NCBI GenBank assembly: GCA_002269645.1
Contig: NIVC01003024.1
Coordinates: 1-64,000, forward strand
Origin: Macrostomum lignano
Lineage: Eukaryota
Length of the DNA: 64,000 nt
Direction of reading: 5' to 3'
Position numbers and translations under genes: made by a program. This document shows positions 7,691 to 57,222 of this stretch, piece after piece. The first letter of the stretch is position 1. The number at the start of each line of letters is the position of its first letter. The notes below the pieces were generated by a model. The model did not search any database, was not told the DNA's origin, and saw only the letters and a list, made by a program, of their open reading frames with translations.

Positions 7691-9876
7691 TGTCAGTTCT
7701 TGGCAGAGAGGCAAAGAAAAAATGGGGGTTAGAAGGGTGACTAATTTCTTAAATTATGTATCCAACAAGCACATATCATTGTCATGAGCTTGGTGCCCAA
7801 GCCCTGTACATTTCTATTTGTTTGTCTATTTCCCTGCTCTTCCCCATAGTCCCCTATCCCCAGTCCCCTATCCCCAGTGCCCAAACTTAAAAGAACTAGC
7901 TTTTTTAGCTTTGTTAACAAAATTTCTACCTTGCCACACTAGCATAAAATTGGGGGAATGTTTTATTTTTGCTTCCAGTCCAGTGGTGCTAGCTCTAGAA
8001 GTCCCTAATGTATACCATTTGGAGTCTGGTACATATACACTAGGCATACACTTTATAGAATCATGCAAAATAGTTAGTATTAAGAGTTAAGTGGAATAAA
8101 GGATAAAAAAGCTTTTTAGTTTTAAGTTTGTAATTAGGCATATAAACAAAAGTTTATGCATTTTAATTTTCTACCAAATGTACCTAGCATGATCTAGACT
8201 ATAGTTATAGTATATGACACAATGTACTACAGTATGACACTTGCTTGGCACAGTGCTTAGAATCTATGTCAAAAAGCCATTAATAGAATGGATTAAATGT
8301 TAAAAGTTGGAATAGCTATTTGGCATGCTCTGAATAGCAATGTTTTGTTAATATGCCACCATTGCCAAAGCTAAGCAATGCCACACTAGCTAGATCATGT
8401 AATATATGCCCAAAAATTTGGGCATGCATTGGCCTTGCATGCCAAAAGTAGACATATATCACTCTTAAGAAAATAATATATGTGCACACTTGGCATGCAT
8501 CTTAAAGTGAAAAAAAATTCATTGTTAAGCATAAATTTCAAGCTTTCTAGACTTTTAAAGCTTGTAATAAGCTTTTTGTACCTTAAAATGAAAAAAATCA
8601 TTTTAAGCATAAATTTAACACTTTTTAGACTTTTAAAGCTTGTAATAAGGCATTTAAACAATTTTTCCATGTATCAATTTTCTGCTATAAATGGTATAAG
8701 CAAAAAAGCAAAAACCAAATTATTAGTCAAAAAAGGTCCTTTACACAAATTGCATAGATTTGAAAGTGTAAACGTGTACTCATTTTTTTGGCATATGTTT
8801 ATAATTATTCAATTTTTGTTCAGGTGTGCACCCAGCATAATCTGGACTATAGAAGCAACGCAGAGTGCTAAAAAGATGTCACAACACCTAGGCCCTAGTG
8901 CACACTTAGTAACCCCTTGACATGGCCTATGTACCTTGAAAGTGACTCTTTAACCTTGGCATGTTTTTGCTAGACACTTGATGTGCATCTGCACATTTTT
9001 AGATTTTATTCCAATAAGGTATGCTATGATTATGGGATCATAATAAGTGCATATCAGAATGCAAACAAAATTTTTTTGTTTATATCCAATGCATACTGCT
9101 TCATACTAATCCAATCTGCCAAAAAGGCATATGACAAATTTCCATTGTACATTGGCCTTATTTTTCATACATTTTATATATAAGTTATATTTATAGTCTC
9201 TGCTCTATAAACTGTCATTGTATAATATATAATTACAAATGTTTAGCTAAAATGACTAAATCAATGCCAAGCCAACATAAATTCCAAAAAGAAAAGCACT
9301 AATAAAAATTCTTATTGTTGGTTTCAGAAAATGTTCTATTTTTATAATAACTATACAATAATTTAAAATTTGCAGTCTATAAAAAAGTATTTAGCTATTA
9401 TCTTTATGGATCATTCCATAAGAGAGCTATACTTGAAGTAGTATAACTATTTAAAAATCTTATTTCATAAGAAATCTCTATGAATAGAAAGCCTATTTAT
9501 GATTCTCTTAATTTATTGATTCTCTTGATTTGCTACCCTAGATGCTAAAAACATCTATCAAATAATTATTCAATTATCTTTTAAGCTACAACTTGGCATA
9601 GGTATGTTTATACATCAGAAAAGGATTTTGATCCTAAACACTTCCTAAAGTTCTAAATTCCTAGGATCAATGCAAAAATTTGATTCTATCCAATCTCTAA
9701 TTCTAATAAAAAGTCATTAAATAAATTGGTAATCTATTTTTCATTGTAAATTCAAAATGCGACTGCCATTTTAGCAATCTGGACTTTTATTAACTTGAGC
9801 AGTTTAGCAATAAATAGTTTGTTTGTCAGCTCCAATGTTATCGCTCATTAAAAACCATTGGTTAATCTTCCATCAG

Positions 9877-12800: not shown

Positions 12801-12921
12801 GGAGGGCGAGAGCGGCAGCCTCGGCGCCCAGCGGGACGACGAGCGGTGGCGCTCGGATCCGAAGAAGGCCGAGCAGGCAGAGCGGCTGGGCATGGGCGGC
12901 GTGGGACTGGGACAGCGGTGA

Positions 12922-12956
<35 letters not shown>

Positions 12957-17717: not shown

Positions 17718-18584
17718 GCACGGACAAGCCCTGCATCACCTGTGCTCACCCGCATGTCGCATCAGATCAATCGCTTCGTCACTTTCGATACTGGATAAAA
17801 AATTAACAAAATGTTTCTTTTGTCCGCTTCTATAATAATGGTGTTTGGCAATCCCCTTCAATCCCTACAGCCAGTCTCAATTGTGTGCGTTTTACTCGCG
17901 TTTTTCCTGTGTTAACTATTACTATTATTAATAATATTATTGTTATAGAGTATCGTTTTAGTTATGATAATTTCATTACTCTGAAGTCCCAAGCGCTTGC
18001 TTAAAAGTCTAATAATAGATAGTAAAAGTACACTGCTTACTTGGATGCGCTGTCTGATTGCCTTGTGGTGAGCCTGTGTTTCATATTTATTTATTGTTGT
18101 TACTGAATGATAAGATTATTAATAAATTAATAAATCTTATTTTGCCGCATCTACAATTCTGCAACTTGATTGGAAATCCCGTTTTCTGAGCTGATGCCAA
18201 TTCCTGTCAGTAGTCAGTTATGCAAATTCGGAGAATTATTGATAAAACTGTTGGAATTCCATTGACAAGTTGTTTATTTATTATTTATGAGTACAAGTAA
18301 AGCTTTACTCGTATATCTGTTACTTCGTATTTATTCATTTTTTCTCCTGTTGCTTTGCAAACTCTGTTGATTGTGTTGCAGACAATTTCGCGTAAATTAT
18401 TTGTAGTAAGAGCGTTGGTAAAGCGAAATAATTAAAATAAATTAATAGATATCGTTTTCTGTGGCGACGGTTTTAAACGTAAAGCTGAGCCGTCTGTCTG
18501 CGCTCGCAAGTGCTGCCGATAAGTAATGACGGAAATATGAATTGAATGGCGTCCGGCTTCAGTTTTACTTAGCTGATGGGATGC

Positions 18585-18730
18585 AGGGAGACTGCTGATG
18601 GGCTGCAGGAAGATTGCTGATGGGGTGCAGGAAGATTGCTGATGGGGTGCAGGAAGATTGCTGATGGGGTGCAGGGAGATTGCTGATGGGGTGCAGGGAG
18701 ATTGCTGATGGGGTGCAGGGAGACTGCTGC
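18585..18730. repeat. 22-bp repeat (gattgctgatggggtgcaggaa) downstream of the NOP9 stop codon
   Basis: gattgctga at 18612 and 18634, about 6 copies. Confidence 0.9.
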
Positions 18731-18903
18731 TAGAAGGAAGACAAAGCGCACGAACACAGCAAGGGATTCCATAAAGAATTTGTCAATCTGCACAAACAAT
18801 AAAAATGCAGTAGGCAGTGGGCCTTTCAAACTGGTGTATTGTATTTCATATTGGCAACCAAAACTGCGCCACAGAGACAGGAGGAGTCAACTGGCTATCC
18901 AGA

Positions 18904-20695
18904 CTACTGGCTCTTGGCAGGCGGTTTTTTCTGCTTATTTGGCCACATTTTATGCCGCTTTTTAGACTTCGGCTGCTGACTGTCTTCTGCTTCCGCAGCT
19001 GTTACATCTTCGCGGGGACGCTTTGGCTGGTCCTGCTGTTTCTGCTTTTGCTTCTGGGCCTCGTCCAGCCGCTGCTGCAGCCGCTTCCAGTCTCCTGGCC
19101 GGGCAGCCAGCAGCTCGGGTGCAAATTTCTGGCAGGCGAATCTGCCGAACCGGTCAAGCCGCAGCCGCTCCAGCGCTGCCCGGCCGCCGGCGGCCAGCTG
19201 GCGGGCCACGCGTTCGCGCAGCCGGTGATCGCCGACAGCCCAGAAGGCGTCCAGAACTCGGCTGCCGTGCTTGTCGCAGCTCAGCTCCGCCAGGTTGTCC
19301 TGGGGATTGATTTTTTTCGAATTTAACATATCAGGCATTTCTTGAGCTAAGACGGCTTTTAAAAATATTTTTCTTATATTTCTACTGTAAGTAGGATACT
19401 TAATAAACGCTTAGTATTTTTATTTACTTTTTACACGCAATATTGCATCAGTAACGCAAAGATGTTTGTTATAATATAAACTTTAGACATAAACTTTAGA
19501 AATAAACTTTAGAGTTTATTAATTTAAGGTGGACCAGTCTAGGAGGCGTAAATATTAAATCACTTGAGCCTTTTATTGCTCATTACTTTTTCCTGCTCGA
19601 CTACAAGACCTGGTGGACTCTTAGACACTCAGAGATACAGGGCCAATCTTAGAATCAGACTGAAGGCGATCTAAGAATCAGACTGAAGGCGATTCTAAGA
19701 ATCAGACTGAGGGCGATTCTAAGAATCAGACTATGGGCGATTCTAAGAATCAGACTATGGGCGATTCTAAGAATGAGATTGAATGAGATTCTAAGAATGA
19801 GATACAGGGAGATTCTAAGAAAGAGATACTAGATTCTAAGAAAGAGATACTAGATTCTAAGAATGAGATACAAGATTCTAAGAATGAGATACAAGATTCA
19901 GAGAATGAGATACAGGGAGATTCTAAGAAAGAGATACAAGATTCAGAGAATGAGATACAGGGAGATTCTAAGAAAGAGATACTAGATTCTAAGAAAGAGA
20001 TACTAGATTCTAAGAATGAGATACAAGATTCTAAGAATGAGATACAAGATTCTAAGAATGAGATACAAGATTCTGAGAATGAGATAGAAGATTCTGAGAA
20101 TGAGATACAAGATTCTGAGAATGAGATACGAGATTCTGAGAATGAGATTCTAAGACGATTCTAAGAATGAGGCTGAGGGCGATTCTAAGAAACGCACCGG
20201 CTTTAACTTTAACAGCATTAAAACAAAAACAGATTTCTCCCACACAGCCAATAAGCAGAATTGCTGATACAATAAAAGCAAGGGCAACAGTCCGCAGCTC
20301 ACCAGCAGCCGATCGCACAGGCCCAGCTTGATGTCGGCTGGCACAGTGGAGCTGCTCAAACAGGCCTCAAACACCCGGTTGCCGCGCGGACACCGGCACA
20401 GCAGGGCAAGCCGCAGCGGTTGAGAGTGCATCAGGCTGGTGCACAGCAGCTTCGTGTCAGCAAAGCGGAGCAGCTCCTCCAGCAGCTGGCCGCCGGCAAC
20501 GCCCACGCCGCCGTCTGCGCCGGCGCCCACAGCTGCAACAGTGTCGAACAGCGCCGATGAGGAGTCTGCAGACTTGCATGATGATGCAGCTATCGAATCG
20601 AATTTGCGCATCAGCTGGGCTTGGAGACGGCGAGCTTCATCTTGGGGCAGAGGCTGAGCAGCTCGGCACTGCCTAGCTAGCACTACCTGAGGTTT

Positions 20696-20736
<41 letters not shown>

Positions 20737-23700
20737 TGATTACACCTCAGGTCTGGGGGCTCGCCACACATCCCCAATTACCCCAGCTAATGCTGGCACC
20801 CATTTTACAGCCGAGTGAACTGCAGCAATGCAGAGCTGAGTGTCTTGCTCAAAGACACCAAAATGTTTCGAGTGAGTCAAGAATCGAACCCCTGACCTTC
20901 AAGTCGTGAGTCTGACGCGGTTAGCCACTAGGCTACAACCCCCCACTAGGCTACAACTCACACTAGGCTACAACCCCCCACTAGGCTACAACCCCCACTA
21001 GGCTACAACCCCCCACTAGGCTACAACCCCCCACTAGGCTACAACCCCCCACTAGGCTACAACCCCCCACTAGGCTACAACCCCCCACTAGGCTACAACT
21101 CACACTAGGCTACAACCCCCCACTAGGCTACAACTCACACTAGGCTACAACTCACACTAGGCTACAACTCACACTAGGCTACAACCCCCCACTAGGCTAC
21201 AACCCCCCACTAGGCTACAACTCACACTAGGCTACAACCCCCCATTAGGCTACAACCCCTCACTAGGCTACAACCCCCCACTAGGCTACAACTCACACTA
21301 GGCTACAACCCCCCATTAGGCTACAACCCCTCACTAGGCTACAACCTAGGCTATAATTGATTCTAATTTCTAATCTCAAATATTGTCTCCGGTAGTTAAA
21401 TCCCATTCGATGCAAAGCACTTTGCCCAGAGAATACTGAGTGATTTTGAAGGGGTGTTGAAGGGGCAGCGATAGTCAGGGGGGGGGGGCGCCTGACTCTC
21501 AGACCGAAAGTCAGGCCGCTGTACATGTACACCCTGTGTGCGCGTGTGTATGCGTGCGCACAGCATTGGCGCAGCATGTGCTCAGGAGCCAGGGGAATGA
21601 GCAGAATTGTCTCACCCGATGAAAACTGCACCCAGGCCAAGAGGCATCCCAGAGCCACTTGAGTCACCTAAGAGTCACTGCAGGTAACACAGGTAAAATA
21701 GGAAAGGAGTGACTCTTAGACGACTCTAAAACGACGAAATGTCCCGGTGCAAATTGTCAAAGAGAAGTCAGAGAATCAATATTTGAGGCGTTTGACTGTC
21801 TACGACTCTGCGTCAGTTTATGAATTAGAATCGCATTTCGCATTTATAACAACTCAATTTAGTCTGCTTGAATAATGGAGTGTTGAGTCACGTGATGCGC
21901 ATGAACAGGAATTGAAAGCGGAGACCCTACCAGCAGCTGCTGCTGTCTGCCAGGCGGCTGCCGCATCGCCTCGGACAGCCAGCCGGCACAGGGCGAGTCG
22001 CCAACTGCCGAGGCCACCAGCTTGGCAAGCCAGTCGCCAGGCGGAGGGTCCGCTGTCGCCAGGCGCTGCAGGACGAAATTGGCGCTGGGATGCAGGGCCA
22101 GCGCAGCCTCCTTGCCGGCGATGTGGGCGGAGGCAAATTTGCGGAGCTGCTTCGGTGAGAGCAGAGAAACCAGCTGCTCCAGGAAGTAGCAGCCGGTGCT
22201 GCTGCACAGCAGGGAGGGGACGCTGCGGGCATGGGAAAGCATTGAGCATTTGGGGAAATTTGTTTGAAACCAAAATCTCTTTGTAGCTCATTTGATTCAA
22301 AATCTCACACCTGTAGTTTATTTGATTTAAAATCTCACACCTGTAGTTTATGTGATTCAAAATCTTACACCTGTAGTTTATTTGATTCAAAATCTCACAC
22401 CAGTAGTTTATTTGATTCAAAATCTCACACCTGTAGCTTATTTGATTCAAAATCTCACAAATCTCACAAAAGCTTAGCCATCTCAAAATCTCACACCTGT
22501 AGTTTATTTGATTCAAAATCTCACACCTGTAGTTTATGTGATTCAAAATCTTACACCTGTAGTTTATTTGATTTAAAATCTCACACCTGTAGCTTATTTG
22601 AGTCAAAATCTCACACCTGTAGTTTATGTGATTCAAAATCTTACACCTGTAGTTTATTTGATTTAAAATCTCACACCAGTAGTTTATTTGATTCAAAATC
22701 TCACACCTGTAGTTTATTTGATTCAAAATCTCACAAATCTCACAAAAGCTTAGCCATCTCAAAATCTCACACCTGTAGTTTATTTGATTCAAAATCTCAC
22801 ACCTGTAGTTTATGTGATTCAAAATCTTACACCTGTAGTTTATTTGATTTAAAATCTCACACCTGTAGCTTATTTGAGTCAAAATCTCACACCTGTAGTT
22901 TATGTGATTCAAAATCTTACACCTGTAGTTTATTTGATTTAAAATCTCACACCAGTAGTTTATTTGATTCAAAATCTCACACCTGTAGTTTATTTGATTC
23001 AAAATCTCACAAATCTCACAAAAGCTTAGCCATCTCAAAATCTCACACCTGTAGTTTATTTGATTCAAAATCTCACACCTGTAGTTTATGTGATTCAAAA
23101 TCTTACACCTGTAGTTTATTTGATTTAAAATCTCACACCTGTAGCTTATTTGAGTCAAAATCTCACACCTGTAGTTTATGTGATTCAAAATCTCACACCT
23201 GTAGTTTATTTGATTTAAAATCTCACACCAGTAGTTTATTTGATTCAAAATCTCACACCTGTAGTTTATTTGATTCAAAATCTCACACCTGTAGTTTATT
23301 TGATTCAAAATCTCACACCTGTAGCTTATTTGATTCAAAATCTCACACCTGTAGTTTATTTGATTCAAAATCTCACACCTGTAGTTTATTTGATTCAAAA
23401 TCTCACACCTGTAGTTTATTTGATTCAAAATCTCACACCTGTAGTTTATTTGATTCAAAATCTCACACCTGTAGTTTATTTGATTCAAAATCTCACACCT
23501 GTAGCTTATTTGATTCAAAATCTCACACCTGTAGTTTATTTGATTTAAAATCTCACACCTGTAGTTTATGTGATTCAAAATCTCACACCTGTAGTTTATT
23601 TGATTCAAAATCTCACACCAGTAGTTTATTTGATTCAAAATCTCACACCTGTAGTTTATTTGATTCAAAATCTCACACCAGTAGTTTATTTGATTCAAAA

Positions 23701-26700
23701 TCTCACACCTGTAGTTTATTTGATTCAAAATCTCACACCTGTAGTTTATTTGATTCAAAATCTCACACCTGTAGTTTATTTGATTCAAAATCTCACACCT
23801 GTAGTTTATGTGATTCAAAATCTTACACCTGTAGTTTATTTGATTCAAAATCTCACACCAGTAGTTCATGTGATTCAAAATCTTACACCTGTAGTTTATT
23901 TGATTTAAAATCTCACACCTGTAGTTTATTTGATTCAAAATCTCACACCTGTAGTTTATTTGATTCAAAATCTCACACCTGTAGTTTATTTGATTCAAAA
24001 TCTCACACCTGTAGTTTATTTGATTCAAAATCTCACACCTGTAGTTTATTTGATTCAAAATCTCACACCTGTAGTTTATTTGATTTAAAATCTCACACCT
24101 GTAGTTTATTTGATTCAAAATCTCACACCTGTAGCTTATTTGATTCAAAATCTTACACCTGTAGTTTATTTGATTCAAAATCTCACACCTGTAGTTTATT
24201 TGATTCAAAATCTCACACCTGTAGTTTATTTGATTCAAAATCTCACACCTGTAGTTTATTTGATTCAAAATCTCACACCTGTAGTTTATTTGATTCAAAA
24301 TCTCACACCTGTAGTTTATTTGATTCAAAATCTCACACCTGTAGTTTATTTGATTCAAAATCTCACACCTGTAGTTTATTTGATTCAAAATCTCACACCA
24401 GTAGTTTATGTGATTCAAAATCTTACACCTGTAGTTTATTTGATTCAAAATCTCACACCTGTAGTTTATTTGATTCAAAATCTCACACCTGTAGTTTATT
24501 TGATTCAAAATCTCACACCTGTAGTTTATTTGATTCAAAATCTCACACCTGTAGTTTATTTGATTCAAAATCTCACACCTGTAGTTTATTTGATTCAAAA
24601 TCTCACACCTGTAGTTTATTTGATTTAAAATCTCACACCTGTAGTTTATTTGATTCAAAATCTCACACCTGTAGTTTATTTGATTCAAAATCTCACACCT
24701 GTAGCTTATTTGATTCAAAATCTCACACCTGTAGCTTATTTGATTCAAAATCTCACACCTGTAGTTTATTTGATTCAAAATCTCACACCTGTAGTTTATT
24801 TGATTCAAAATCTCACACCTGTAGTTTATTTGATTCAAAATCTCACACCTGTAGTTTATTTGATTCAAAATCTCACACCTGTAGTTTATTTGATTCAAAA
24901 TCTCACACCTGTAGTTTATTTGATTCAAAATCTCACACCTGTAGCTTATTTGATTCAAAATCTTACACCTGTAGTTTATTTGATTCAAAATCTCACACCT
25001 GTAGTTTATTTGATTCAAAATCTCACACCTGTAGTTTATTTGATTCAAAATCTCACACCTGTAGTTTATTTGATTTAAAATCTCACACCTGTAGTTTATT
25101 TGATTCAAAATCTCACACCTGTAGTTTATTTGATTCAAAATCTCACACCTGTAGTTTATTTGATTCAAAATCTCACACCTGTAGTTTATTTGATTCAAAA
25201 TCTCACACCTGTAGTTTATTTGATTCAAAATCTCACACCTGTAGTTTATTTGATTCAAAATCTCACACCTGTAGTTTATTTGATTCAAAATCTCACACCT
25301 GTAGTTTATTTGATTCAAAATCTCACACCTGTAGTTTATTTGATTCAAAATCTCACACCTGTAGTTTATTTGATTCAAAATCTCACACCTGTAGTTTATT
25401 TGATTCAAAATCTCACACCTGTAGTTTATTTGATTCAAAATCTCACACCTGTAGTTTATTTAATTCAAAATCTCACACCTGTAGCTTATTTGATTTAAAA
25501 TCTCACACCTGTAGTTTATTTGATTCAAAATCTCACACCTGTAGTTTATTTGATTCAAAATCTCACACCTGTAGTTTATTTGATTCAAAATCTCACACCT
25601 GTAGTTTATTTGATTCAAAATCTCACACCTGTAGCTTATTTGATTCAAAATCTCACACCTGTAGTTTATTTGAAATCTCACAAAAGCTCACACATCTCAA
25701 AATCTCACAAAACACACTCACCTGTACTTCTCCCCCAATGCCTCTATCTCGCAGGTGGCATCAAGGAGTCCGGACGCCTTATTCAGGTGCTTAATAAATT
25801 TTCTAAATCGCTTTGGCAACCGCAGCTTCAGCACCAGCATGAGCACCTGAAGAAAAGGACCCGTCACTTCGCTGTCAATCAGGGCTGCAATGTTGATGAA
25901 CAGGTGATCACTGGCAGATGAGCGATTTATAACAAAACCATTGTATTGCTATATTGTATTGCTGTCTTGCTACAATATTAATATTATATTTATTACGTCA
26001 CAACTTTAACATGTACTGATGTACATACTATCAAGCTTATGACTTGCAGTTATGTCGAAATTTGAATAACCCATTAATGACTCACTTCAGAGAATCAATG
26101 ACCCATTAATGACTCACTTCAGAGAATCAGTGACCCATTAATGACTCACTTCAGAGAATCAATGACCCATTAATGACTCACTTCAGAGAATCAATGACCC
26201 ATTAATGACTCACTTCAGAGAATCAATGACCCATTAATGACTCACTTCAGAGAATCAATGACCCATTAATGACTCACTTCAGAGAATCAATGACCCATTA
26301 ATGACTCACTTCAGAGAATAAATGACCCATTAATGACTCACTTTAGAGAATAAATGACCCATTAATGACTCACTTCAGAGAATAAATGACCCATTAATGA
26401 CTCACTTCAGAGAATCAATGACCCATTAATGACTCAATTTAGAGAACAAATGACCCATTAATGACTCACTTTAGAGAATAAATGACCCGTTAATGACTCA
26501 CTTTAGAGAATAAATGACCCATTAATGACTCACTTCAAAGAATCAATGATCCATTAAAAACTCATGACTCACTTCAGAGGGTCAATGACCCAATATTGAA
26601 AGATCATATCACGGCATGACTTGGCAATTTATGAACCAACAAGCCTCAACCCCCGCAACTCACACAGAACGTGCTTGTTCTCCAGGAACCGTGAGCACAA

Positions 26701-29384
26701 GCCATCCAATTCTTCAGTGAGCGAAATGCCATCGAATTCAAGAGGCGGATCGACCAGAACGGAACTGCTGGGATCGTAGGAGTCTGCAATGATGCGGGCG
26801 GATTAGCAGCTTATTGATATGGCAGGTGAAATCGGAATCTATTCATACTATTGTCAGTTTTCTGTGGTTACCCGCATTTGAACCACCCTACCCATTTCTC
26901 TACCCCATCACACCCTACCCATTTATCTACCCCTTTACACCCTACCCATTTATCTACCCCATCACACCCTACCCATTTATCTACCCCATCACACCCTACC
27001 CATTTATCTACCCCATCACACCCTACCCATTTATCTACCCCATCACACCCTACCCATTTATCTACCCCATCACACCCTACCCATTTCTCTACCCCATCAC
27101 ACCCTACCCATTTATCTACCCCTTTACACCCTACCCATTTATCTACCCCATCACACCCTACCCATTTATCTACCCCATCACACCCTACCCATTTATCTAC
27201 CCCATCACACCCTACCCATTTCTCTACCCCATCACACCCTACCCATTTATCTACCCCTTTACACCCTACCCATTTATCTACCCCATCACACCCTACCCAT
27301 TTATCTACCCCATCACACCCTACCCATTTATCTACCCCATCACACCCTACCCATTTATCTACCCCATCACACCCTACCCATTTATCTACCCCATCACACC
27401 CTACCCATTTATCTACCCCTTTACACCCTACCCATTTATCTACCCCATCACACCCTACCCATTTATCTACCCCATCACACCCTACCCATTTATCTAACCC
27501 ATCACACCCTACCCATTTCTCTACCCCATCACACCCTACCCATTTATCTACCCCATCACACCCTACCCATTTATCTACCCCTTTACACCCTACCCATTTA
27601 TCTACCCCATCACACCCTACCCATTTATCTACCCCATCACACCCTACCCATTTATCTACCCCATCACACCCTACCCATTTATCTACGCCTTTACACCCTA
27701 CCCACTTATCTACCCCATCACACCCTACCCATTTATCTACCCCATCACACCCTACCCATTTATCTACCCCATCACACCCTACCCATTTATCTACCCCATC
27801 ACACCCTACCCATTTATCTACCCCATCACACCCTACCCCATTTCTATCCTGATACACCCCAGTCCCCAGCCATCTCTACACGATTACACCATACCTATTG
27901 CCTACGCAATGGACACTTGTTTTTACAACAACCTTCCTACAACAAAGAGCTACATGAGTCACACACACACCGTGCTTGTTAAACGAAGAGCCAGATGGTG
28001 CAGTGGGGTTGGCAGAGACCAGCACCCCACCAATAAGCAGCAGGTAGCTGCGCAGAGTGTGACAAGCGTAGGGGTGCTCCAGGTACTCGGGGTAGTGCAG
28101 GCGCATGTGAGCAGCGAAGGTTCCCCACAGCCGGCTCGGGTCGGACTCGACTGATAACGGCTCGCCGTCCACTGCTCCGTCATCGTCTGCGCTGCCGGCG
28201 GCGTCCGCTTCACCCCTGCCTGGGGATTTTTGGTTGTTTGGTTGGGGCTCTGTTCAACTTTGGATCCCGACCGGGGATCTGGAGACGGCGGTGCTGGCCC
28301 AGCAACTGAGGATCTGGGAGACTGTTTGCCCAGCAACGGAGGATCTGGGAGGCTGGCCCAGCAACTGAGGATCTGGGAGGCTGGCCCAGAAACTGAGGAT
28401 CTGGGAGGCTGGCCCAGCAACTGAGGATCTGGGAGGCTGGCCCAGCAACTGAGGATCTGGGAGGCTGATGGCCCAGCAACTGAGGATCTGGAAGGCTGGC
28501 CCAGCAAAGGAGGATCTGGGAGGCTGGTGGCCCAGCAACTAAGGATCTGGGAGGCTGGTGGCCCAGCAACTGAGGATCTGGGAGGCTGATGGCCTAGCAA
28601 CTGAGGATCTGGAAGGCTGGCCCAGCAACGGAGGATCTGGGAGGCTGGCCCAGCAAAGGAGGATCTGGGAGGCTGGTGGCCCAGCAACTGAGGATCTGGA
28701 AGGCTGGCCCAGCAACTGAGGATCTGGGAGGCTGATGGCCCAGCAACTGAGGATCTGGAAGGCTGATGGCCCAGCAACTGAGGATCTGGAGGGCTGGCCC
28801 AGCAACTGAGGATCTGGAAGGCTGGCCCAGCAACTGAGGATCTGGGAAACTGTCAAATGCCACTCATTTGAGAATCCAGAAGGTTGACAGCTCAGTTAAA
28901 AGCTCACAAACCTTCAAGCCGCAGCGTCAGGTACCGCCTAATAGCGGTTTGCAGCACCCGGTGGGCAAACCTGTCGCCAACAACTGCAGGCCAGTTGGCG
29001 GCGAAGTTGTTGAGCAGGCGGGCCAGCCGGGGCCAGTCGGCCAGATTGATGAGGGACTCGGCAAGCCGAGAGCCAGTCTGGTTCTGAGCCAGCTGGCGGC
29101 CCTCCCTGGCCAGGCTATCAAATGCCGTGCTCAGAAGCTGCTCTGTTGGAAGTCGGCGAGTGGATAATCCATATCTAGCTAATCTCAGTAAAAATTCCAA
29201 ATCTCCAAACTTAGGAATAATTGAGTCTACTCATATTGATCTCACCATAATCGTCCGGATTTCCCCAACTAGGTGAGCGCATCTCGTCGAGATTGCGCAG
29301 AGTTTCTCTGTAATAAGCTAGCACATTGTGATCTAAGCGACCTTTGCGACCGCCAGATGATGATGAGGCCTGATCCCCGTGCAT
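18904..29384 (-). CDS. NOP9: Nucleolar protein 9 (Pumilio-repeat rRNA processing factor)
   Basis: Eight GT-AG exons in consistent phase: 29246-29384, 28935-29142, 27971-28215, 26666-26783, 25722-25910, 21931-22222, 20303-20686, 18904-19299. The exon-4 donor is inferred from phase. Motifs AQNQTGSRLAESL, GDRFAHRVLQT, LEHPYACHTLRS, LHPSANFVLQRL, RCPRGNRVFEA, SCDKHGSRVLDAFW and a basic C-terminal tail match NOP9. Confidence 0.9.
19640..20190. repeat. 19-21 bp minisatellite (gattctaagaatgagatacaa) in NOP9 last intron
   Basis: gattctaagaa core repeated throughout. Confidence 0.9.
20698..20940 (-). mobile_element. tRNA-derived SINE with a CORE/Meta-like central domain and (ATT)n tail
   Basis: Minus strand: A box gtagcctagtggctaa (about 20936), B box ggttcgattc (20890-20881), central tgtctttgagcaagacact...ctgtaaaatggg resembling the CORE domain, and a 3-prime (att)n tail at 20698-20737. 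Confidence 0.75.
20926..21345. repeat. 18-20 bp minisatellite (cactaggctacaacccc) built from the SINE 5-prime end
   Basis: The unit is continuous with, and identical to, the SINE A-box region. Confidence 0.9.
22270..25680. repeat. 30-bp minisatellite (gattcaaaatctcacacctgtagtttattt), about 110 copies, with a 276-bp higher-order repeat
   Basis: Exact 30-bp period from 23040 to 25670. The interruption agcttagcc recurs at 22471, 22747 and 23023 (276-bp spacing). Confidence 0.97.
26063..26575. repeat. 32-bp minisatellite (aatgacccattaatgactcacttcagagaatc), about 16 copies
   Basis: acccatta at 26101 and 26133. Confidence 0.95.
26880..27845. repeat. 27-bp minisatellite (cccatcacaccctacccatttatctac), about 36 copies
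   Basis: 9-aa period in the ORF track (PSHPTHLST). Confidence 0.95.
28285..28850. repeat. 28-32 bp minisatellite (ggatctgggaggctggcccagcaactga) in NOP9 intron 2
   Basis: Direct tandem copies with optional gatg/ggtg inserts. Confidence 0.9.
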
Positions 29385-35740: not shown

Positions 35741-36365
<625 letters not shown>

Positions 36366-43835: not shown

Positions 43836-44462
43836 TACATCAAATGAAATTAAATGAGCTACAGAAAGTAAAGAGCTTAATTTATTGATATACAGCTAAG
43901 AAAATAGTGTAACAATTTGTCTAAATTCTCCACTGAATGCAAAAAAAAATAAAATTGATGCGTCATGATACGCTATATGACACAAAAATAAAACCTTTCT
44001 GTCTGTAACATGACCAAAATCAACTTTCAATCATTCAAGCGAATTCCGTTTATGTACTTTGGTGCTGACAAGGACAGCAAAGCGAATCAATGTAATAATA
44101 TACGCTCGTAATAACATTCGCCTAACTATTGTGCATTGGCCTTAATATTAAACTTGTTTATTTAATATTGAATGATTATTGAACTGCTATAACAGACACC
44201 ATTACCATTATCGATTGAAAGATTAAAACAAATTAAATCGATTTCAATCAATATATTAAAATCCATATAATTCCTAAATCGCGTATGGCGCGAGACAGAA
44301 AAAAAATAACCAAACACCATTAACTTGTTCAATATGCTTATTCTAACTGAATGAGATGTAATGATATAGTTCCACTGAAAATGTAATAAAACATGCATTA
44401 CATTTTCCGAGAACCTGCATGCAGCTGTCCACGCAATAATGCAAGTATTTAATAGTTCTAAA

Positions 44463-44696
44463 TCAGCCGAATCGAAACAGGAAGGTAGAGTGACGACCCT
44501 TAGTAAAAAACCATTTGCGATCCATCGGAAGTTCCGCAGTCTCCTCGTCCAGATCGGCGAATTCCTCTGCCAATTTTTCCGCTGTCGGCTGCTGCAGGTC
44601 TCCATCGTTTCCTGGTTTCTCTGATGGCTGAGCTGACACCTGAGATACCAGCAGGCACAAACACAGCAGCACCAGGATAGTTAACACTCTGCTCAT
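44463..44696 (-). CDS. RFamide neuropeptide precursor (77 aa; predicted HSTFLFRFamide or WFFTKGRHSTFLFRFamide)
   Basis: Signal peptide MSRVLTILVLLCLCLLVSQVSA, acidic pro-region (EKLAEEFADLDEETAELP), dibasic RK site and terminal FLFRF-G-stop (amidation glycine). AATAAA on the minus strand at 44162-44157. Confidence 0.85.
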   Translation of the reverse strand: MSRVLTILVLLCLCLLVSQVSAQPSEKPGNDGDLQQPTAEKLAEEFADLDEETAELPMDRKWFFTKGRHSTFLFRFG

Positions 44697-45665
44697 GATT
44701 ATGATTATGAGTCGATTAAAGATTTTCTTTGTAGCTAGATCGAGGTACATGTGTTTCTAGCAGAAATTTAAAGTGATTTTTGTTTAAACAAACTGACCCG
44801 TTTTATGCGTTGCAGCACGTGGCTGCAGCTCTAGACGATGGCATGACTCATGATGACACTTGGCAAACAGTCAAGCTTTCGTTTCCTTTCATCATTTTCG
44901 AATTCATCAACTTAAGACGCTTTTTAAACAGTTTGTCAGAGCAAACAGTCGTTTAGTAGGTTCAGACAGAGCACTGGAGGCATGGAAGCGACTCCTCCGC
45001 CCCAAGATGGGGCCAGGCTGTTTCAAAACAGTACATGTACAACCGCTTTTGACAAATTTGAAAAAAATTGAGTCAGTTGAAAGCGCTAACTTCTTTAAAC
45101 AAAAGAAGTTTGATGTGTTCGTGAGTTTGTCTTTGACGGGCCGAACATATTCGTATAGACGTACTGTATATTTTATTTCGGTTCACTTGGCACTGTGTGA
45201 AACTCACACGTGTGACCTCTTGTGATGGCGATAGACTCCGGTCGCAACGCAACGCTTGTGTCCTAAATCCCTCTCGCCCCCGGTCCTGCAGTCAAAGACT
45301 GCTGGACCAATCCAAGGAGTTCTATAATTAGCAATCTGGAAGTGGAAACGAGTTTTACCTAAGAAGGCCACTCAAGTTGTTAAGATTAGGAGCCAGCACT
45401 GAATGTCTGTGACGATCTGTCTGACTCAACTCTTTAACCAATTAATTCTTGGTTAAAAATCCAAGAATCTGTCAGGCGGGAGAAGAACAGAGCTAACTAA
45501 GCTCTTTCAGCTAACAAATACACACAAACATTGAAATCAGCCAGCCCCCCACATTTCTAACTCAATAAAACCACTAAAACCGAGTTCCATTCCCTTCTTT
45601 CTATGGTAAATGTATATCGCAGAAGTCACTGGTAAAAGTGAAAAACTCGTTTCCACTCCAGATTG

Positions 45666-46107
45666 CTAATTAACATTTCCTGACAAAACATTTTCTCGAT
45701 CCAACGCTGGGTCAAGGACTCCAATTGTTTCGTCGCTCAGATCGACGCAGTGACGGAGGGCGTCGCAATCGTACCAGGCGTTGAGCTGTCCGCACATTGT
45801 CTCGCTAGTACACGTGTCTCGCTTATTGCCACAAAGCGGTACATCGCGTAAAGCGATTGGTTGAAAGTTTTTTTCGGATGTTCCGTCCAAGCAAAAGCTT
45901 TCCTGACGAGTCCCGATCCTCATTCTGTGTTGTGGGGTAGCTGGATATCGTTTTCTGTATTCCAACTTTGAAGCTCTTGCTATCTGCCTCGGACGTCTGC
46001 ACAGAATTCTTAGGCGTTCGGTTGAAGACCTCCACCGTGCCATTCCGTCTCGGTCTGTTGAGTTAGAATTGGTAGAATTGGTTAAAGCCAAACATTCTTC
46101 CATCCCC
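45666..46107 (-). other. Orphan exon-like ORF with an LDL-receptor class A-like cysteine motif
   Basis: Acceptor ttttgtctccag at about 46108. Translation includes DTCTSETMCGQLNAWYDCDALRHCVDLSDE and N-glycosylation sequons. No upstream exon identified. Confidence 0.4.
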
Positions 46108-50935: not shown

Positions 50936-51909
50936 GATTGATTGTGTCTATGGCAGAAACTCACATGATAGTTTGTGTCGATGGCAGCAAGCTACATGAC
51001 CGATTGTGTCTATGGCAGCAAGCCACATGACTGATTGTGTCTATGGCAGCAAGCCACATGACTGATTGTGTCGATGGCAGCAAGCCACATGACTGATTGT
51101 GTCTATGGCAGCAAGCCACATGACTGATTGTGTCTATGGCAGAAAGCCACATGACTGATTGTGTCGATGGCAGCAAGCCACATTATTGATTGTGTCTATG
51201 GCAGCAAGCCACATTATTGATTGTGTCTATGGCAGCAAGCCACATGACCGATTGTGTCTATGGCAGCAAGCTACATGACCGATTGTGTCGATGGCAGCAA
51301 GCCACATGACTGATTGTGTCTATGGCAGCAAGCCACATGACTGATTGTGTCGATGGCAGCAAGCCACATGACTGATTGTGTCTATGGCAGCAAGCCACAT
51401 GATTGATTGTGTCAATGGCAGCAAGCCACATGACTGATTGTGTCAATGGCAGCAAGCCACATGACTGATTGTGTCTATGGCAGCAAGCCACATGACTGAT
51501 TGTGTCAATGGCAGCAAGCTACATGACTGATTGTGTCAATGGTAGCAAGCCACATGACTGATTGTGTCTATGGCAGCAAGCCACATGACTGATTGTGTCT
51601 ATGGCAGCAAGCCACATGACTGATTGTGTCAATGGCAGCAAGCTACATGACTGATTGTGTCAATGGTAGCAAGCCACATGACTGATTGTGTCAATGGTAG
51701 CAAGCCACATGACTGATTGTGTCTATGGCAGCAAGCCACATGACTGATTGTGTCGATGGCAGCAAGCCACATGACTGATTGTGTCTATGGCAGCAAGCTA
51801 CATGACTGATAGTGTCAATGGCAGCAAGCTACATGACTGATTGTGTCAATGGCAGCAAGCCACATGACTGATTGTGTCTATGGCAGCAAGCTACATGACT
51901 GATTGTGTC
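50936..51909. repeat. 31-bp satellite (gattgtgtctatggcagcaagccacatgact), block 1
   Basis: actgattg at 51061 and 51092; about 31 copies. Confidence 0.97.
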
Positions 51910-52162
51910 TGTGACATAGTGACACGATGAACTTTGCTTTAGGTTGCATGCACTGTAGTGTTGACTCACTAGCAGTGGAGTTGTTATTGATCGGCTTAGA
52001 GATTGTATTTTATTCCACCCCACCCCATGCGCGCGTTTGAATCTGTCTGCACCCACCACCTCAGTGCTAAATAATAAATGTGAACAGCCTAGCTCTCAAG
52101 CGAGCACCTTTTACTCACTCCTGCAATTCCACACTTCTGTCTCGCTTAACAAAGTTATCACA
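51910..52162 (+). repeat. 5-prime LTR (253 bp)
   Basis: tgtgacatag...gttatcaca; matches the 3-prime LTR. Confidence 0.95.
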
Positions 52163-55100
52163 ATGGCGACGGGTCTGCCCACGCTGGGCCAACTGCTACC
52201 ATCTACAAACATCGAGATCTTCCTAGAGCGTCTCGAGCAGTACTTCATCTGCAAGGAGGTGAAGGATGAGGCAAAAGTGGCAACTCTGATCACGTCGATT
52301 GGAGAGGAGGCTTACATCACACTGCGGAGTCTGTGCCAGCCGGTCCAAGTGGCGCAGAAGTCTTACGCTGACTTGAAGAAGCTGCTGACAACGCACTTCG
52401 CACCCAAGCCTTCGGAGCTAGCTGCGAGGTTCCGTTTCCAACAACGAACTCAGCAAGCAGGCGAGAGCTTCACGGCATTCATCGCGGGGCTCCAGGCTCT
52501 GTCAGCTGACTGCAACTTCGGTGAGTCGCTAAATGAGCGGCTCCGAGACCAACTCGTGTTCGGCCTTCGAAGCGACGCCTATCGAGCCAAGCTGCTGGAA
52601 GTCGTTGAGCCGACTTTTGAATCCCTGCAAACAAAGGCTATGTCGCTGGAGTCTGCAGAGCGTTCGTCCCTGGAGATGTCACAAAGGGCATCGGAGTCTG
52701 TTGCCAATCTGCAATTTGTCAGCAAGAGAGGTAGCCGCAAGCAGGTGACACCTTCAGCGCACCACAGAGGGCATCGGGTCAGCGGCAGCGACAACGGCGG
52801 CAGCGGCAACGGCGGCAGCGGCAACGGCAGCGGCAATGGCAGCGGCAACGGTGGCGGTGGCAGCTCATGCAAAAGCTGTGGCGGTTCCCACGAGCGTCAT
52901 TCATGCAAGTTCAGGGACGCCAAGTGCCATGCATGCGGCAAGGTCGGCCATATCCGCAAGGTCTGCCAGTCCACCAAGCAGGCCAAGCTACACATGTTAC
53001 AAGAGGTGCGGATGGCACCTACTGTCGAAGGCGCGTGTGACACCCAGGTGCCCATCTTCGCAGTCCGACCAACAGGCAGCAACGCTGGACCGACAGTCAT
53101 GCTGCTCGTCAACGGACAGGAATGCCAGTTTGTCATCGACACCGGCTCTGCAGTCACGCTGATGCCGCAGCAGCTGCAGCAGAAGTTGCTTCCTCAGCTA
53201 CAACTGGCTCCATCGGCCGCAGTTCTGCGAACCTTCACCAATGAACGCTTTCATCCGCGAGGCCAAGCCACAGTCTGCGTCCAGCACAACGCCCAGCAGC
53301 TACAGCTACCGCTGCTTGTAGTCGACAAAGGAGACACGGCACTGCTGGGACGAGACTGGCTGGCTCACCTTCGGCTGGACTGGCCGAAAATTATGGCCCA
53401 GGTGCACGCCGTGTCGACCGATAGCGACATCAGCGACCTGCATGAGAGATTTGCTGCGGTGTTCGAGGACCGACTTGGCGAATATCGACACGGTAAAGTG
53501 CGGCTCAACGTCGTCGACGGTGCCCAACCTCGGTTCTTTAAAGCCCGCCCGGTTCCGTATGCACTACGAGAGCGCGTGGACGAGGAGCTGCAGAGACTGG
53601 AGGCCAACGGCATCATTTCGGCGGTTAAGCACAGCGATTGGGCCTCTCCGATCGTTCCGGTGGTCAAGAAGGATGGCGGCGTCAGGATTTGCGGTGATTA
53701 TACGCAAACTTTCAACCCGGCGTGCCTGACCGAACAGTACCCTCTACCCAAGATCGAGGACCTGTTTGCCAAGCTGGGAGGCGGCTGCAAGTGGACAAAA
53801 CTCGATCTGTCCAATGCCTTCCTGCAGCTTCCGCTCGCCGAAGACAGCAAAGCCTTCGTCACGATCAACACGCCGAAGGGACTCTACCAGTTCAATCGCA
53901 TGCCTTTTGGGATCAAGTGCGCCACTGCGATCTTCCAACAGACACTGGACACTCTGCTAGGAGATCTCGACTCTGTCCAGGTGTTTGTCGATGACATCCT
54001 GGTCACCGGCAAGACGATGCACCAACATAAGAAAAACCTGGAAGAAGTTCTGCAGCGCCTTCTTGATTCGGGACTCAGGCTGAACAAGCAAAAGAGCCAG
54101 TTCTTCATGGACTCAGTCGAGTATTTGGGTTACCGCATTGACGCATGTGGACTCAGCCCGCTGACGGACAGGGTGGCCGCAATTCAAGACGCCCCAGCGC
54201 CGAAGGATATCAGCCAGCTGCGCTCGTTCCTCGGCATGCTGACTCAGTACGGCCGGTTCCTGCCTAACCTGTCCACCGTAGTGGCGCCGCTCAATCAGCT
54301 GCTGGCCAAGGACGTTCGTTGGACGTGGGACAAGCCGCAGCAAACCGCCTTCAGCGAAGCTAAGCGTCTGCTGCTCCATTCACCTGTGCTGGTGCATTAC
54401 AATCCGGATCTGCCGCTGCGGCTCGAGTGTGACGCTTCACCATACGGAGTGGGTGTGGTGTTGTCCCATCGCATCGGCAACAAAGACTGCGCAGTGGCAT
54501 TCGCTAGCCGCACCCTGAACGCAGCACAGCGGGGCTACTCGCAGCTCGACAAGGAAGCGCTGGCCATAATGTTCGGGCTGCACCGCTTCCATCAATTCCT
54601 CTACGGCCGGAGATTCACGATAGTCACTGATCACCTGCCGCTACTCGGGCTACTGGGCGAGTGGAAAGGCATCCCGGCACACGCTGCAGCCCGCATGCAG
54701 CGGTGGGCGATCCGGCTGGCGAGCTATGACTATGCGCTCGAGTTTCGGCCGACGGAGAAGCACGCCAACTGCGACTCGCTGTCCCGGCTGCCATTGCCGC
54801 AGCAGTTCGAGGAGGAGACAGCGGTTAACTCGCTGCTGATCGACGAGGGCGCAGGTTCGGCCGCCACTGCAGCGACGGTGGCGCGGCTCACCAGGACGGA
54901 TGCGGTGCTAGGGCGCGTGCTGCGCTGTCTGCAGACGGGTTCGACCATCTGCGCCGACCTGACCGACTTCGCCAGGCGCCAGAGCGAGCTGTCCATTGAC
55001 CAGGGCTGCGTGCTGTGGGGCGCTCGAGTTGTGGTGCCAGCCGCCTTGCGACAACAAGTGTTGAACGAGCTGCACCAAGCCCACCCTGGCATCAGCCGCA

Positions 55101-56119
55101 TGCGCGCCCTCGCGAGAAGCTACGTCTGGTGGCCAAGTATCGACAAAGACTTGGAAGCCACAGTAAAAGCCTGTCGCACCTGCCAGCTCAATCAGGCGGA
55201 TCCATCCAAGGCCCCGGTGCAGCCCTGGCCATTCCCGACTGAGCCATGGGAGCGGTTGCACATCGACTACGCGGGACCTGTGGACGGCCGCACTTACCTG
55301 GTCCTGGTCGACGCGCACAGTAAGTGGCCAGAGGTGCACAGGATGAGCGGCACCACTGCAACTGCGACGATCAGCTGTCTGCGAGAAATCTTCGCTCGTC
55401 TCGGCCTACCGAGAACCTTGGTGTCGGACAACGGGCCTCAATTCGCTTCGGCCGAGTTCGCTGAGTTCGTCAGTTCCAACGGCATCCGGCACATCTTCTC
55501 GGCGCCATTCCACCCGGCGACCAACGGCCAGGCCGAGCGCTTCGTCCAGGTGCTGAAGCGGCATCTGAGTAAGTGCGGTCACTCCGACGCGCAACTTCAA
55601 CGACTGCTGATGGCCTACCGCAACACTCCGCACAGCGTCAGTGGCACCGCGCCGAGTCAGCTGCTCATTGGCCGCCGGCTGCGCAGCCGGCTGGACCTCC
55701 TGACACCATCGTTGACTTCGGCCATGCAACAGCGACAGCAGCATCAGTTTCAGCAGCAGCGGCCAGCGCGCCAGTTCCAGCCTGGAGATCGTGTGCTCTA
55801 CCGTGATTTCAGCACTGCTGCTCGTGCAGGAGAAAGCAGCCGCTGGGCCGAAGGTGTCATCGTCAATGCCGGCACTCGCAACTGCACAGTCGATTCCGGG
55901 CGCGGCGTACAAGCGCGACACGCTGACCAGCTGCTAGCGGCTTCTGCTGGGCTGGCCGAGTCGAACAGCAGCACAACCCCGGCCGAGGACTGCGCGGCAC
56001 CTGACGTTGGCGGCACGTCTACCTCGCCGCAGGCAGATACGGCTGACTCTGCTAACGAGGCACCCCGGCGCTACCCAGATCGAGTTCGAGCACCACCTGA
56101 CAGATTGATGCTGCAGTGA
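52163..56119 (+). CDS. Gag-Pol polyprotein (Gag, two Zn knuckles, protease, RT, RNase H, integrase), 1318 aa
   Basis: CKSCGGSHERHSC and CHACGKVGHIRKVC knuckles; VIDTGS protease; FVDD RT; CDASPYG RNase H; HHCC zinc finger; HIDYAGP, VSDNGPQF and NGQAERFVQ integrase. Domain order PR-RT-RH-IN is Gypsy-type. Confidence 0.97.
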   Translation: MATGLPTLGQLLPSTNIEIFLERLEQYFICKEVKDEAKVATLITSIGEEAYITLRSLCQPVQVAQKSYADLKKLLTTHFAPKPSELAARFRFQQRTQQAGESFTAFIAGLQALSADCNFGESLNERLRDQLVFGLRSDAYRAKLLEVVEPTFESLQTKAMSLESAERSSLEMSQRASESVANLQFVSKRGSRKQVTPSAHHRGHRVSGSDNGGSGNGGSGNGSGNGSGNGGGGSSCKSCGGSHERHSCKFRDAKCHACGKVGHIRKVCQSTKQAKLHMLQEVRMAPTVEGACDTQVPIFAVRPTGSNAGPTVMLLVNGQECQFVIDTGSAVTLMPQQLQQKLLPQLQLAPSAAVLRTFTNERFHPRGQATVCVQHNAQQLQLPLLVVDKGDTALLGRDWLAHLRLDWPKIMAQVHAVSTDSDISDLHERFAAVFEDRLGEYRHGKVRLNVVDGAQPRFFKARPVPYALRERVDEELQRLEANGIISAVKHSDWASPIVPVVKKDGGVRICGDYTQTFNPACLTEQYPLPKIEDLFAKLGGGCKWTKLDLSNAFLQLPLAEDSKAFVTINTPKGLYQFNRMPFGIKCATAIFQQTLDTLLGDLDSVQVFVDDILVTGKTMHQHKKNLEEVLQRLLDSGLRLNKQKSQFFMDSVEYLGYRIDACGLSPLTDRVAAIQDAPAPKDISQLRSFLGMLTQYGRFLPNLSTVVAPLNQLLAKDVRWTWDKPQQTAFSEAKRLLLHSPVLVHYNPDLPLRLECDASPYGVGVVLSHRIGNKDCAVAFASRTLNAAQRGYSQLDKEALAIMFGLHRFHQFLYGRRFTIVTDHLPLLGLLGEWKGIPAHAAARMQRWAIRLASYDYALEFRPTEKHANCDSLSRLPLPQQFEEETAVNSLLIDEGAGSAATAATVARLTRTDAVLGRVLRCLQTGSTICADLTDFARRQSELSIDQGCVLWGARVVVPAALRQQVLNELHQAHPGISRMRALARSYVWWPSIDKDLEATVKACRTCQLNQADPSKAPVQPWPFPTEPWERLHIDYAGPVDGRTYLVLVDAHSKWPEVHRMSGTTATATISCLREIFARLGLPRTLVSDNGPQFASAEFAEFVSSNGIRHIFSAPFHPATNGQAERFVQVLKRHLSKCGHSDAQLQRLLMAYRNTPHSVSGTAPSQLLIGRRLRSRLDLLTPSLTSAMQQRQQHQFQQQRPARQFQPGDRVLYRDFSTAARAGESSRWAEGVIVNAGTRNCTVDSGRGVQARHADQLLAASAGLAESNSSTTPAEDCAAPDVGGTSTSPQADTADSANEAPRRYPDRVRAPPDRLMLQ

Positions 56120-56141
56120 GGGCGTTAACTTAGGGGGGAGA

Positions 56142-56394
56142 TGTGACATAGTGACACGATGAACTTTGCTTTAGGTTGCATGCACTGTAGTGTTGACTCA
56201 CTAGCAGTGGAGTTGTTATTGATCGGCTTAGAGATTGTATTTTATTCCACCCCACCCCATGCGCGCGTTTGAATCTGTCTGCACCCACCACCTCAGTGCT
56301 AAATAATAAATGTGAACAGCCTAGCTCTCAAGCGAGCACCTTTTACTCACTCCTGCAATTCCACACTTCTGTCTCGCTTAACAAAGTTATCACA
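56142..56394 (+). repeat. 3-prime LTR (253 bp)
   Basis: Preceded by the polypurine tract; matches the 5-prime LTR. Confidence 0.95.
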
Positions 56395-57222
56395 TTGTCA
56401 ATGGCAGCAAGCTACATGACTGATTGTGTCAAAGGCATGCAAGTTACATGACTGATTGTGTCAATGGCAGCAAGCTACATGACTGATTGTGTCTATGGCA
56501 GCAAGCCACATGACTGATTGTGTCTATGGCAGCAAGCCACATGACTGATTGTGTCTATGGCAGAAACTCACATGATAGTTTGTGTCGATGGCAGCAAGCC
56601 ACATGACTGATTGTGTCTATGGCAGAAACTCACATGATAGTTTGTGTCTATGGCAGCAAGCCAACATGACTGATTGTGTCTATGACAGCAAGCCACATTA
56701 CTGATTGTGTCAATGGCAGCAAGCCACATGATAGTTTGTGTCGATGGCAGCAAGCCACATGACTGATTGTGTGTATGGCAGCAAGCCACATGACTGATTG
56801 TGTCTATGACAGCAAGCCACATGACTGATTGTGTCTATGGCAGAAACTCACATGATAGTTTGTGTCTATGGCAGCAAGCCACATGACTGATTGTGTCTAT
56901 GGCAGCAAGCCACATGATAGTTTGTGTCTATGGCAGCAAGCCAACATGACTGATTGTGTCTATGGCAGCAAGCCACATGACTGATTGTGTCAATGGCAGG
57001 AAGCTACATGACTGATTGTGTCAATGGCAGCAAGCCACATGATAGTTTGTGTCTATGGCAGCAAGCCACATGACTGATTGTGTCTATGGCAGCAAGCCAC
57101 ATTATTGATTGTGTCAATGGCAGCAAGCCACATTATTGATTGTGTCTATGGCAGCAAGCCACATGACTGATTGTGTCAATGGCAGCAAGCCACATGACTG
57201 ATTGTGTCTATAGAAGCAAGCC
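56395..57222. repeat. 31-bp satellite, block 2
   Basis: Same unit resumes right after the 3-prime LTR. Confidence 0.97.

Follow-up and report, generated by a model that had tools for sequence, protein, structure and literature searches.

A compact Macrostomum lignano open reading frame with the sequence hallmarks of an RFamide neuropeptide precursor

In flatworms, RFamide peptides strongly excite muscle and also serve as signals in development, and the receptors for them are regarded as targets for anthelmintics. The main survey of neuropeptides in this group, by McVeigh et al. (2009), reportedly included ESTs of Macrostomum lignano. Among vertebrates, QRFP/26RFa ends in F-x-F-R-F-amide.

In the planarian Schmidtea mediterranea, amidated products of neuropeptide precursors have been seen by mass spectrometry (MS) in a peptidomics study (Collins et al., 2010, PMC2953531). 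Among validated precursors, the nearest in kind to the locus described here is Smed-npp-4, a flatworm FRFamide FLP (relatives of Moniezia expansa GNFFRFamide). Its precursor of 110 aa comprises a signal peptide, an acidic spacer and five peptide copies; the peptides include SSVFRFamide, SVAFRFamide, RGVAFRFamide and GSVFRYamide, and the final copy reads ...KRQSVFRYG-stop (PMC2953531). Planarian NPP-3 terminates in Gly-stop and spp-11 in YIRFGR-stop, and cleavage after Gly-Arg with amidation has been confirmed by MS in NPP-1 and SPP-15 (PMC2953531). In molluscs, STLFRFamide and TLFRFamide of Aplysia are among the LFRFamide (sNPF-type) peptides, and oyster members of this group activate a receptor of the sNPF type (Zatylny-Gaudin and Favrel, 2014, PMC4208409).

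Here, we describe a candidate precursor frame on the minus strand of M. lignano contig NIVC01003024.1 (assembly GCA_002269645.1), at 44696..44463. The window, i.e. the whole stretch of DNA that was analysed, is 64 kb long, and its coordinates are those of the contig for the ORF region. The frame translates as MSRVLTILVLLCLCLLVSQVSA, QPSEKPGNDGDLQQPTAEKLAEEFADLDEETAELPMD, RK, WFFTKGRHSTFLFRF, G and stop (Table 1). The original prediction had claimed this architecture of signal peptide, acidic spacer, RK site, peptide and Gly-stop without naming the strand, which is the minus strand; it can indeed be read in the sequence, and the pattern is non-random when compared with shuffled DNA. Judged by its sequence, the ORF has all the marks of a small precursor of an RFamide neuropeptide, to a degree far above what chance would give. 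Our preferred reading, to which we give an even chance, is that it is a single-exon, lineage-restricted M. lignano gene for a 77-residue RFamide-type (FMRFamide-like) prepropeptide that is intact in one copy. That it is a real gene for a secreted prepropeptide, whatever its role, we consider somewhat better than an even bet.

Table 1. Features of the candidate precursor locus and its neighbourhood (L003, the paralogous locus on contig NIVC01001545.1)
Feature	Position	Strand	Basis or remarks
Whole ORF, 77 codons + stop, single exon	44463..44696	-	ATG 44696-44694, TGA 44465-44463
Predicted signal peptide MSRVLTILVLLCLCLLVSQVSA, residues 1-22	44631..44696	-	Sequence + heuristic; cleavage expected VSA/Gln23
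Acidic spacer (propeptide) QPSEK...ELPMD, QPSEKPGNDGDLQQPTAEKLAEEFADLDEETAELPMD, 37 residues	44520..44630	-	Residue counts
Arg60-Lys61, candidate dibasic convertase site	44514..44519	-	Sequence
Long candidate peptide WFFTKGRHSTFLFRF, 15 residues	44469..44513	-	Amidated [M+H]+ 1976.044 (computed)
Short candidate peptide HSTFLFRF, 8 residues	44469..44492	-	Amidated [M+H]+ 1053.563 (computed)
Gly77, candidate amidation donor, abuts stop	44466..44468	-	Sequence; precedent Smed-NPP-4, NPP-3
Upstream in-frame TAG 44759-44757, then AAA, CAC, alternative ATG 44750-44748	44748..44759	-	Sequence
ATTAAA hexamer, 10 nt past stop	44448..44453	-	Sequence; same in paralogue
SID-1 (dsRNA channel) homologue, single exon, 795 aa	47908-50295; L003 10001-12388	+	Pfam PF13965, E = 3e-109
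LTR retrotransposon, apparently intact	51910-56404	+	gag-pol-type ORF 52037/52163-56119
ArfGAP-domain exon	9823-10100	+	Pfam PF01412, E = 3e-27

The start codon has an A at -3, which is a good context, while the alternative in-frame ATG, 18 codons upstream, has a weaker one. The predicted signal peptide follows an n-h-c layout, in which R3 precedes a hydrophobic core of 14 residues and V-S-A occupies -3 to -1; it was recognized by a custom hydrophobicity and -3/-1 heuristic that ~1.8% of shuffled ORFs pass. Twelve of the 37 spacer residues are Asp or Glu and two are basic (both Lys). The 15-mer WFFTKGRHSTFLFRF has a net charge of +3 plus one His, and aromatic residues make up 6 of its 15 positions. 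Gly67-Arg68 is a candidate cut site that would give HSTFLFRF and could yield WFFTK-amide too, for which the computed [M+H]+ is 727.393. Outside the coding part, a pyrimidine-rich ...tttctgctAG that ends at 44757 could be a splice or trans-splice acceptor, and the ATTAAA hexamer is at most a possible poly(A) signal, because such hexamers are common in AT-rich DNA. Another minus-strand frame, open for 147 codons at 44162-44605, spans the 3' half of the ORF and the AT-rich 3' flank; it would encode an Arg-rich product that resembles out-of-frame nonsense.

Of the general features of a neuropeptide precursor, the ORF has a signal peptide (by the heuristic), basic sites flanking a short peptide and a C-terminal Gly. 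Smed-npp-4 and the ORF share a small precursor (110 versus 77 aa) with a signal peptide and an acidic spacer, and both place a peptide followed by Gly-stop at the C-terminus, QSVFRYG-stop in the planarian and FLFRFG-stop here. The peptides also have a common Ser/Thr-x-hydrophobic-FRFamide shape (SSVFRFa and STFLFRFa); those of Smed-npp-4 end in [V/A]FRF-Gly and that of the ORF in FLFRF-Gly. In the npp-4 family, several copies of x-[V/A/F]-F-R-[F/Y]-Gly are separated by Lys-Arg, five such Lys-Arg-flanked copies in Smed-npp-4 itself, whereas the ORF has a single one, preceded by Arg-Lys or Gly-Arg. Homology of the precursors was likewise not detected, as the two proteins have no alignable similarity beyond the FRFG motif: BLASTP of the ORF against Smed-npp-4 aligned no segment at E <= 100. 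Used as a database query, Smed-npp-4 retrieved itself and one cephalopod FMRFamide precursor, and no Macrostomum protein. Because the BLASTP comparison was null and LFRF is absent from all 51 S. mediterranea prohormones, family assignment rests on a five-residue motif. Overall, the RFamide reading gains from the MS-validated planarian precursors, since they share its build and its end, and it is weakened by the single peptide copy and by Arg-Lys in place of Lys-Arg.

A peptide at the extreme C-terminus with a Gly-stop amidation end is an arrangement validated in flatworms. The assignment of the C-terminal Gly as amidation donor in the original prediction is in line with flatworm MS precedents, Smed-NPP-4 QSVFRYa.G# and NPP-3 AIVLTRFa.G# (PMC2953531). 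Both of the peptide lengths that it proposed, 8 and 15 residues, can be read, and the 8-mer is the better precedented. We prefer HSTFLFRF-NH2, perhaps accompanied by WFFTK-NH2, to the 15-mer because cleavage at Gly-Arg has been seen in the planarian, while N-terminal 'RK.' cleavage was not found among the MS-confirmed planarian peptides in the tables of PMC2953531.

In the scheme that follows from the preferred reading, we infer transcription, every processing step, amidation, neuronal expression and the receptor alike. Residues 1-22 would route the protein into the secretory pathway and then be removed. A prohormone convertase would cut after Gly67-Arg68 and/or Arg60-Lys61, peptidylglycine alpha-amidating monooxygenase would use the terminal Gly77, and the product would be HSTFLFRF-NH2 or the 15-residue WFFTKGRHSTFLFRF-NH2. 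The acidic spacer would serve as a carrier that neutralizes the basic, aromatic peptide, and the target of the peptide would be a receptor of the RFamide type, whether a GPCR or a peptide-gated channel. The copy in the window would be intact, and that on NIVC01001545.1 would be disabled by a 2-bp insertion or mis-assembled. In favour of this reading, a pc2 convertase homologue of M. lignano has an RNAi phenotype (PMC4490696).

The alternative that survives best, which we consider rather unlikely, is that the ORF has no function; it would be an accidental frame in an intergenic patch rich in G+C, or the relic of a gene in decay, and would give no peptide of consequence. Chance was assessed with 2000 dinucleotide-preserving shuffles of the 64-kb window in 300-bp blocks, so that local composition was kept; an earlier run with 1-kb blocks gave a concordant result. 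A signal-peptide-like start combined with RFG-stop occurred three times in the 2000 shuffled windows (0.0015 per window), and such a start with a dibasic site and an R[FY]G end occurred twice. The full pattern including the acidic spacer was found in none of the 2000, and with the spacer added and any Gly end accepted, the count in the shuffles was 0/107. The absence of the joint pattern and the rate of ~0.001 per window for partial ones argue against a chance frame, as does the rarity of the acidic stretch in real sequence: an equally acidic 37-residue stretch occurs in 2 of 314 open segments of at least 60 aa in the window, the other being a tandem repeat. Within the window, the precursor pattern is unique to this ORF. 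Its length is ordinary; the combination of features is not, and in the 764-Mb genome (~12,000 windows) the number of full-pattern ORFs expected by chance is well under one. In favour of a chance frame, the hydrophobic start is encoded by CTG/TG-rich low-complexity DNA, which is frequent in the repeat-rich genome of M. lignano, and there are 12 signal-peptide-like ORFs in the real window versus about 6 in the shuffles. For both reasons the shuffles understate chance somewhat, and the scan that picked out this ORF possibly spanned many windows.

Base composition and codon use bear on the same question. The ORF has a G+C content of 51% between flanks of 26-31%, and the fit of the borders of this G+C island to the frame speaks against a non-functional ORF; further G+C-rich patches nearby, without obvious genes, speak for one. 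At codon positions 1, 2 and 3, G+C is 0.59, 0.40 and 0.55, a coding-type GC1>GC3>GC2 order. Codon log-odds, scored with the SID-1 CDS as the training set, are +0.12 in the frame of the ORF and lie between -0.11 and -0.29 in the remaining five, and this positive bias in one frame only likewise argues for coding; the score ranks 15th among the 78 window ORFs of 60-130 aa. Taken together, G+C content and frame-specific codon bias are a weak but consistent fit to a coding exon. The ORF was described in the original prediction as small enough for gene predictors to miss, which turns out to be wrong, because a 96-aa call for exactly this ORF (P0001; single exon, 291 nt) is already in a public protein collection, as one of just three gene calls across 22 kb; being independent, this call also counts in favour of a gene. 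The call starts with His, at CAC codon 44753-44751, one codon before the upstream ATG and two codons after the in-frame TAG. It might derive from a transcript model, as a CDS that is partial on its 5' side, with the 5' end of the model or a trans-splice site after ...ctAG located here.

The ORF does not belong to a repeat or transposon, since self-BLAST of 43.0-46.5 kb against the window found no second copy of it. Two pairs of inverted repeats flank the ORF region without overlapping the ORF, one of ~70 bp with 84-85% identity (43441-43509/43770-43836) and one of 32 bp with 97% identity (45325-45356/45642-45672); they may mark the ends of small non-autonomous elements. Tandem repeats make up about a quarter of the window. 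Varied arrays crowd 10101-28847 and 35741-36365, among them a 30-bp satellite of 112 copies (22282-25673), units of 21, 20, 27, 34 and 17 bp and a (TATC)156 microsatellite, and they yield very long spurious ORFs in several frames. The ArfGAP exon continues in frame into an open 10-bp-period repeat (10101-10721). The LTR retrotransposon, whose 263-bp LTRs (51910-52172 and 56142-56404) are 98% identical, sits inside a 31-bp-period tandem array (50939-51910, 56396-57222), and its insertion is recent, as it is absent from the paralogous contig.

That contig brings in the evidence of a second copy. Large blocks of the neopolyploid M. lignano genome are duplicated (PMC5730564), and NIVC01001545.1 (locus L003) encodes an identical SID-1 protein; between the two contigs, the intergenic DNA that separates SID-1 from the ORF aligns at ~96%. 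The segment homologous to the ORF occupies ~143,027-143,262 of NIVC01001545.1. The paralogue has a 2-bp insertion at codon 15/16, in the signal-peptide region (~44649/44650 of the window, ~143,076 of NIVC01001545.1), which shifts the frame and so leaves its peptide frame without an ATG. Its ATG-initiated frame runs instead into the Arg-rich nonsense frame, which is the one at 44162-44605. The 55 codons after the signal peptide stay open to FRFG-stop, with one replacement (Pro24 to Lys, CCA to AAA, through CC-to-AA at 44626-44627) and one synonymous change (TTC to TTT in Phe76, the last Phe). By the conservation of the FRFG terminus in relatives that the original prediction looked to, the paralogous contig, to which the comparison was confined, speaks half for the gene, through its FRFG-stop, and half against it, through the frameshift upstream.

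Between the copies, the ORF differs by 3 substitutions and 1 indel in 234 bp, which matches the neutral expectation because 5.4 kb of aligned intergenic DNA shows ~1.9% substitutions and 0.57 indel events per 100 bp. Divergence as high as that of intergenic DNA, with a frame-breaking 2-bp indel that has no outgroup to polarize it, supports a non-functional ORF; in a variant of this explanation, a 2-bp deletion in the window copy may have joined a Leu/Cys-rich frame to an acidic one. The RFamide reading is weakened accordingly, because the ORF diverges like intergenic DNA while the SID-1 CDS, 3 kb away, is identical. That CDS has 0/2388 nt differences where ~10 synonymous ones would be expected, and its flanking DNA differs by ~2% plus indels, which suggests gene conversion or RNA-seq-based Pilon homogenization over selection alone. 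The assembly was made with Canu on PacBio reads and polished by Pilon with Illumina and RNA-seq reads (PMC5730564), and residual indel errors in near-identical duplicates, or artificial homogenization of expressed regions, are possible. Divergence is also patchy, with 3 differences in 342 bp around the ORF versus 11 in 169 bp past its 3' side, a contrast that argues against a non-functional ORF. Given this patchiness and the possible assembly errors, the paralogue is weaker as evidence against the gene. Its state would fit a disabled second copy, an assembly error and an absence of constraint equally.

Homologues were not found, as would be the case for a non-functional ORF. With the 77-aa query, a word-indexed search of 5.8 billion proteins matched only the window's own gene call, and an exhaustive phmmer search of 1.84 billion representative proteins gave no homologue besides that call. 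Exact look-ups of the 77-, 95- and 97-aa forms returned no record, nor did that of the neighbouring 1318-aa gene call, and a Pfam search with the ORF had no match. A control search with SID-1 found no other Macrostomum or transcript-derived entries, its best foreign match being a mussel protein at 33% identity. Because this control is equally bare, a missing homologue or transcript entry carries no weight against the gene.

On balance, the pattern of features taken by itself speaks roughly fivefold or better for a secretory precursor that is real or was so until recently, and composition and codon bias add a little in the same direction. The frameshifted, unconstrained-looking paralogue lowers the odds of a real gene by a factor of about three.

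A secreted prepropeptide could also be real and non-neuronal, i.e. a host-defence (antimicrobial), gland or seminal-fluid peptide, a reading that we find quite improbable. Amphibian-type antimicrobial precursors are built from a signal peptide, an acidic propiece, Lys-Arg and a cationic amidated peptide. The ORF has the same three-part layout, with a strongly anionic propiece (12 acidic residues of 37) and a C-terminal peptide with a Gly donor that is cationic (+3 plus His) and rich in aromatic residues (6/15); there is no sequence relation, however, and the RFamide end is foreign to those families. Lineage restriction and fast evolution are typical of defence and reproductive genes, and this gene would be lineage-restricted and apparently fast-evolving, with an expendable paralogue. 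Against a non-neuronal role, the FRF-Gly C-terminus is a specific signature of flatworm and mollusc RFamide neuropeptides, and the peptide is rather short for one that acts on membranes. We know of no flatworm antimicrobial peptide of this type.

Very slim is the chance that the ORF forms the terminal exon of a larger gene on the minus strand or of a polycistronic transcript, with an internal transmembrane stretch and an incidental RFG end, for which one may cite possible pyrimidine-preceded acceptor AGs between the TAG at 44759-44757 and the ATG, the non-ATG (His) start of the public gene call, like that of a 5'-partial CDS, a 145-aa minus-strand ORF 0.9 kb upstream (45666-46103), and a genome in which ~7% of transcriptional units are polycistronic and 39% of genes trans-spliced (PMC5730564); but the good-context ATG leads directly into the canonical n-h-c arrangement of a signal peptide, no significant Pfam match was obtained for the upstream ORF, which is no better conserved between the copies, and the gene call is exactly one 291-nt exon.

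A known RNA gene was ruled out as an explanation by an Rfam search of 38-52 kb, which had no match. A scan for bacterial promoters and terminators was at background level and is irrelevant for a eukaryote.

Returning to the RFamide reading, its most specific form is that HSTFLFRF-NH2 is a platyhelminth ligand of the sNPF/PrRP-type (LFRFamide) system, released from a stripped-down, one-peptide precursor; we regard this as a slim prospect. The C-terminus of the molluscan LFRFamides is identical to that of the ORF, and STLFRFa and TLFRFa differ from -STFLFRFa by a single inserted Phe. Molluscan LFRFamide precursors, however, hold 4-6 peptides of 6-8 residues, whereas the ORF has one copy, and no likeness was found outside the last five residues. 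QRFP peptides are 26-43 residues long and lie inside a longer precursor, whereas the ORF peptide has at most 15; with no supporting homologue in the searches either, the ORF falls outside QRFP/26RFa, and the likeness is one of five residues. The resemblance to sNPF/LFRFamide and QRFP in the original prediction therefore holds for the C-terminal motif, while orthology would rest on just 4-5 C-terminal residues and is a lead, not a finding. The literature search found no flatworm sNPF-type ligand, and a full-text search found no paper in which FLFRF and Macrostomum appear together.

M. lignano is free-living, and transgenesis and RNAi are feasible in it, so that a new ligand would be directly testable there. 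If the gene is not real, the locus is a warning that a textbook-looking precursor can show no sign of constraint in a repeat-rich neopolyploid genome. If it is real, it would be an unusually compact addition to the flatworm RFamide/FLP precursors, an already known kind, through which an LFRFamide-ending peptide would join the flatworm repertoire and bear on sNPF-type signalling in Platyhelminthes. Should the sNPF/PrRP ligand reading also be true, the molluscan LFRFamide family would extend to flatworms, which would aid the deorphanization of flatworm RFamide receptors.
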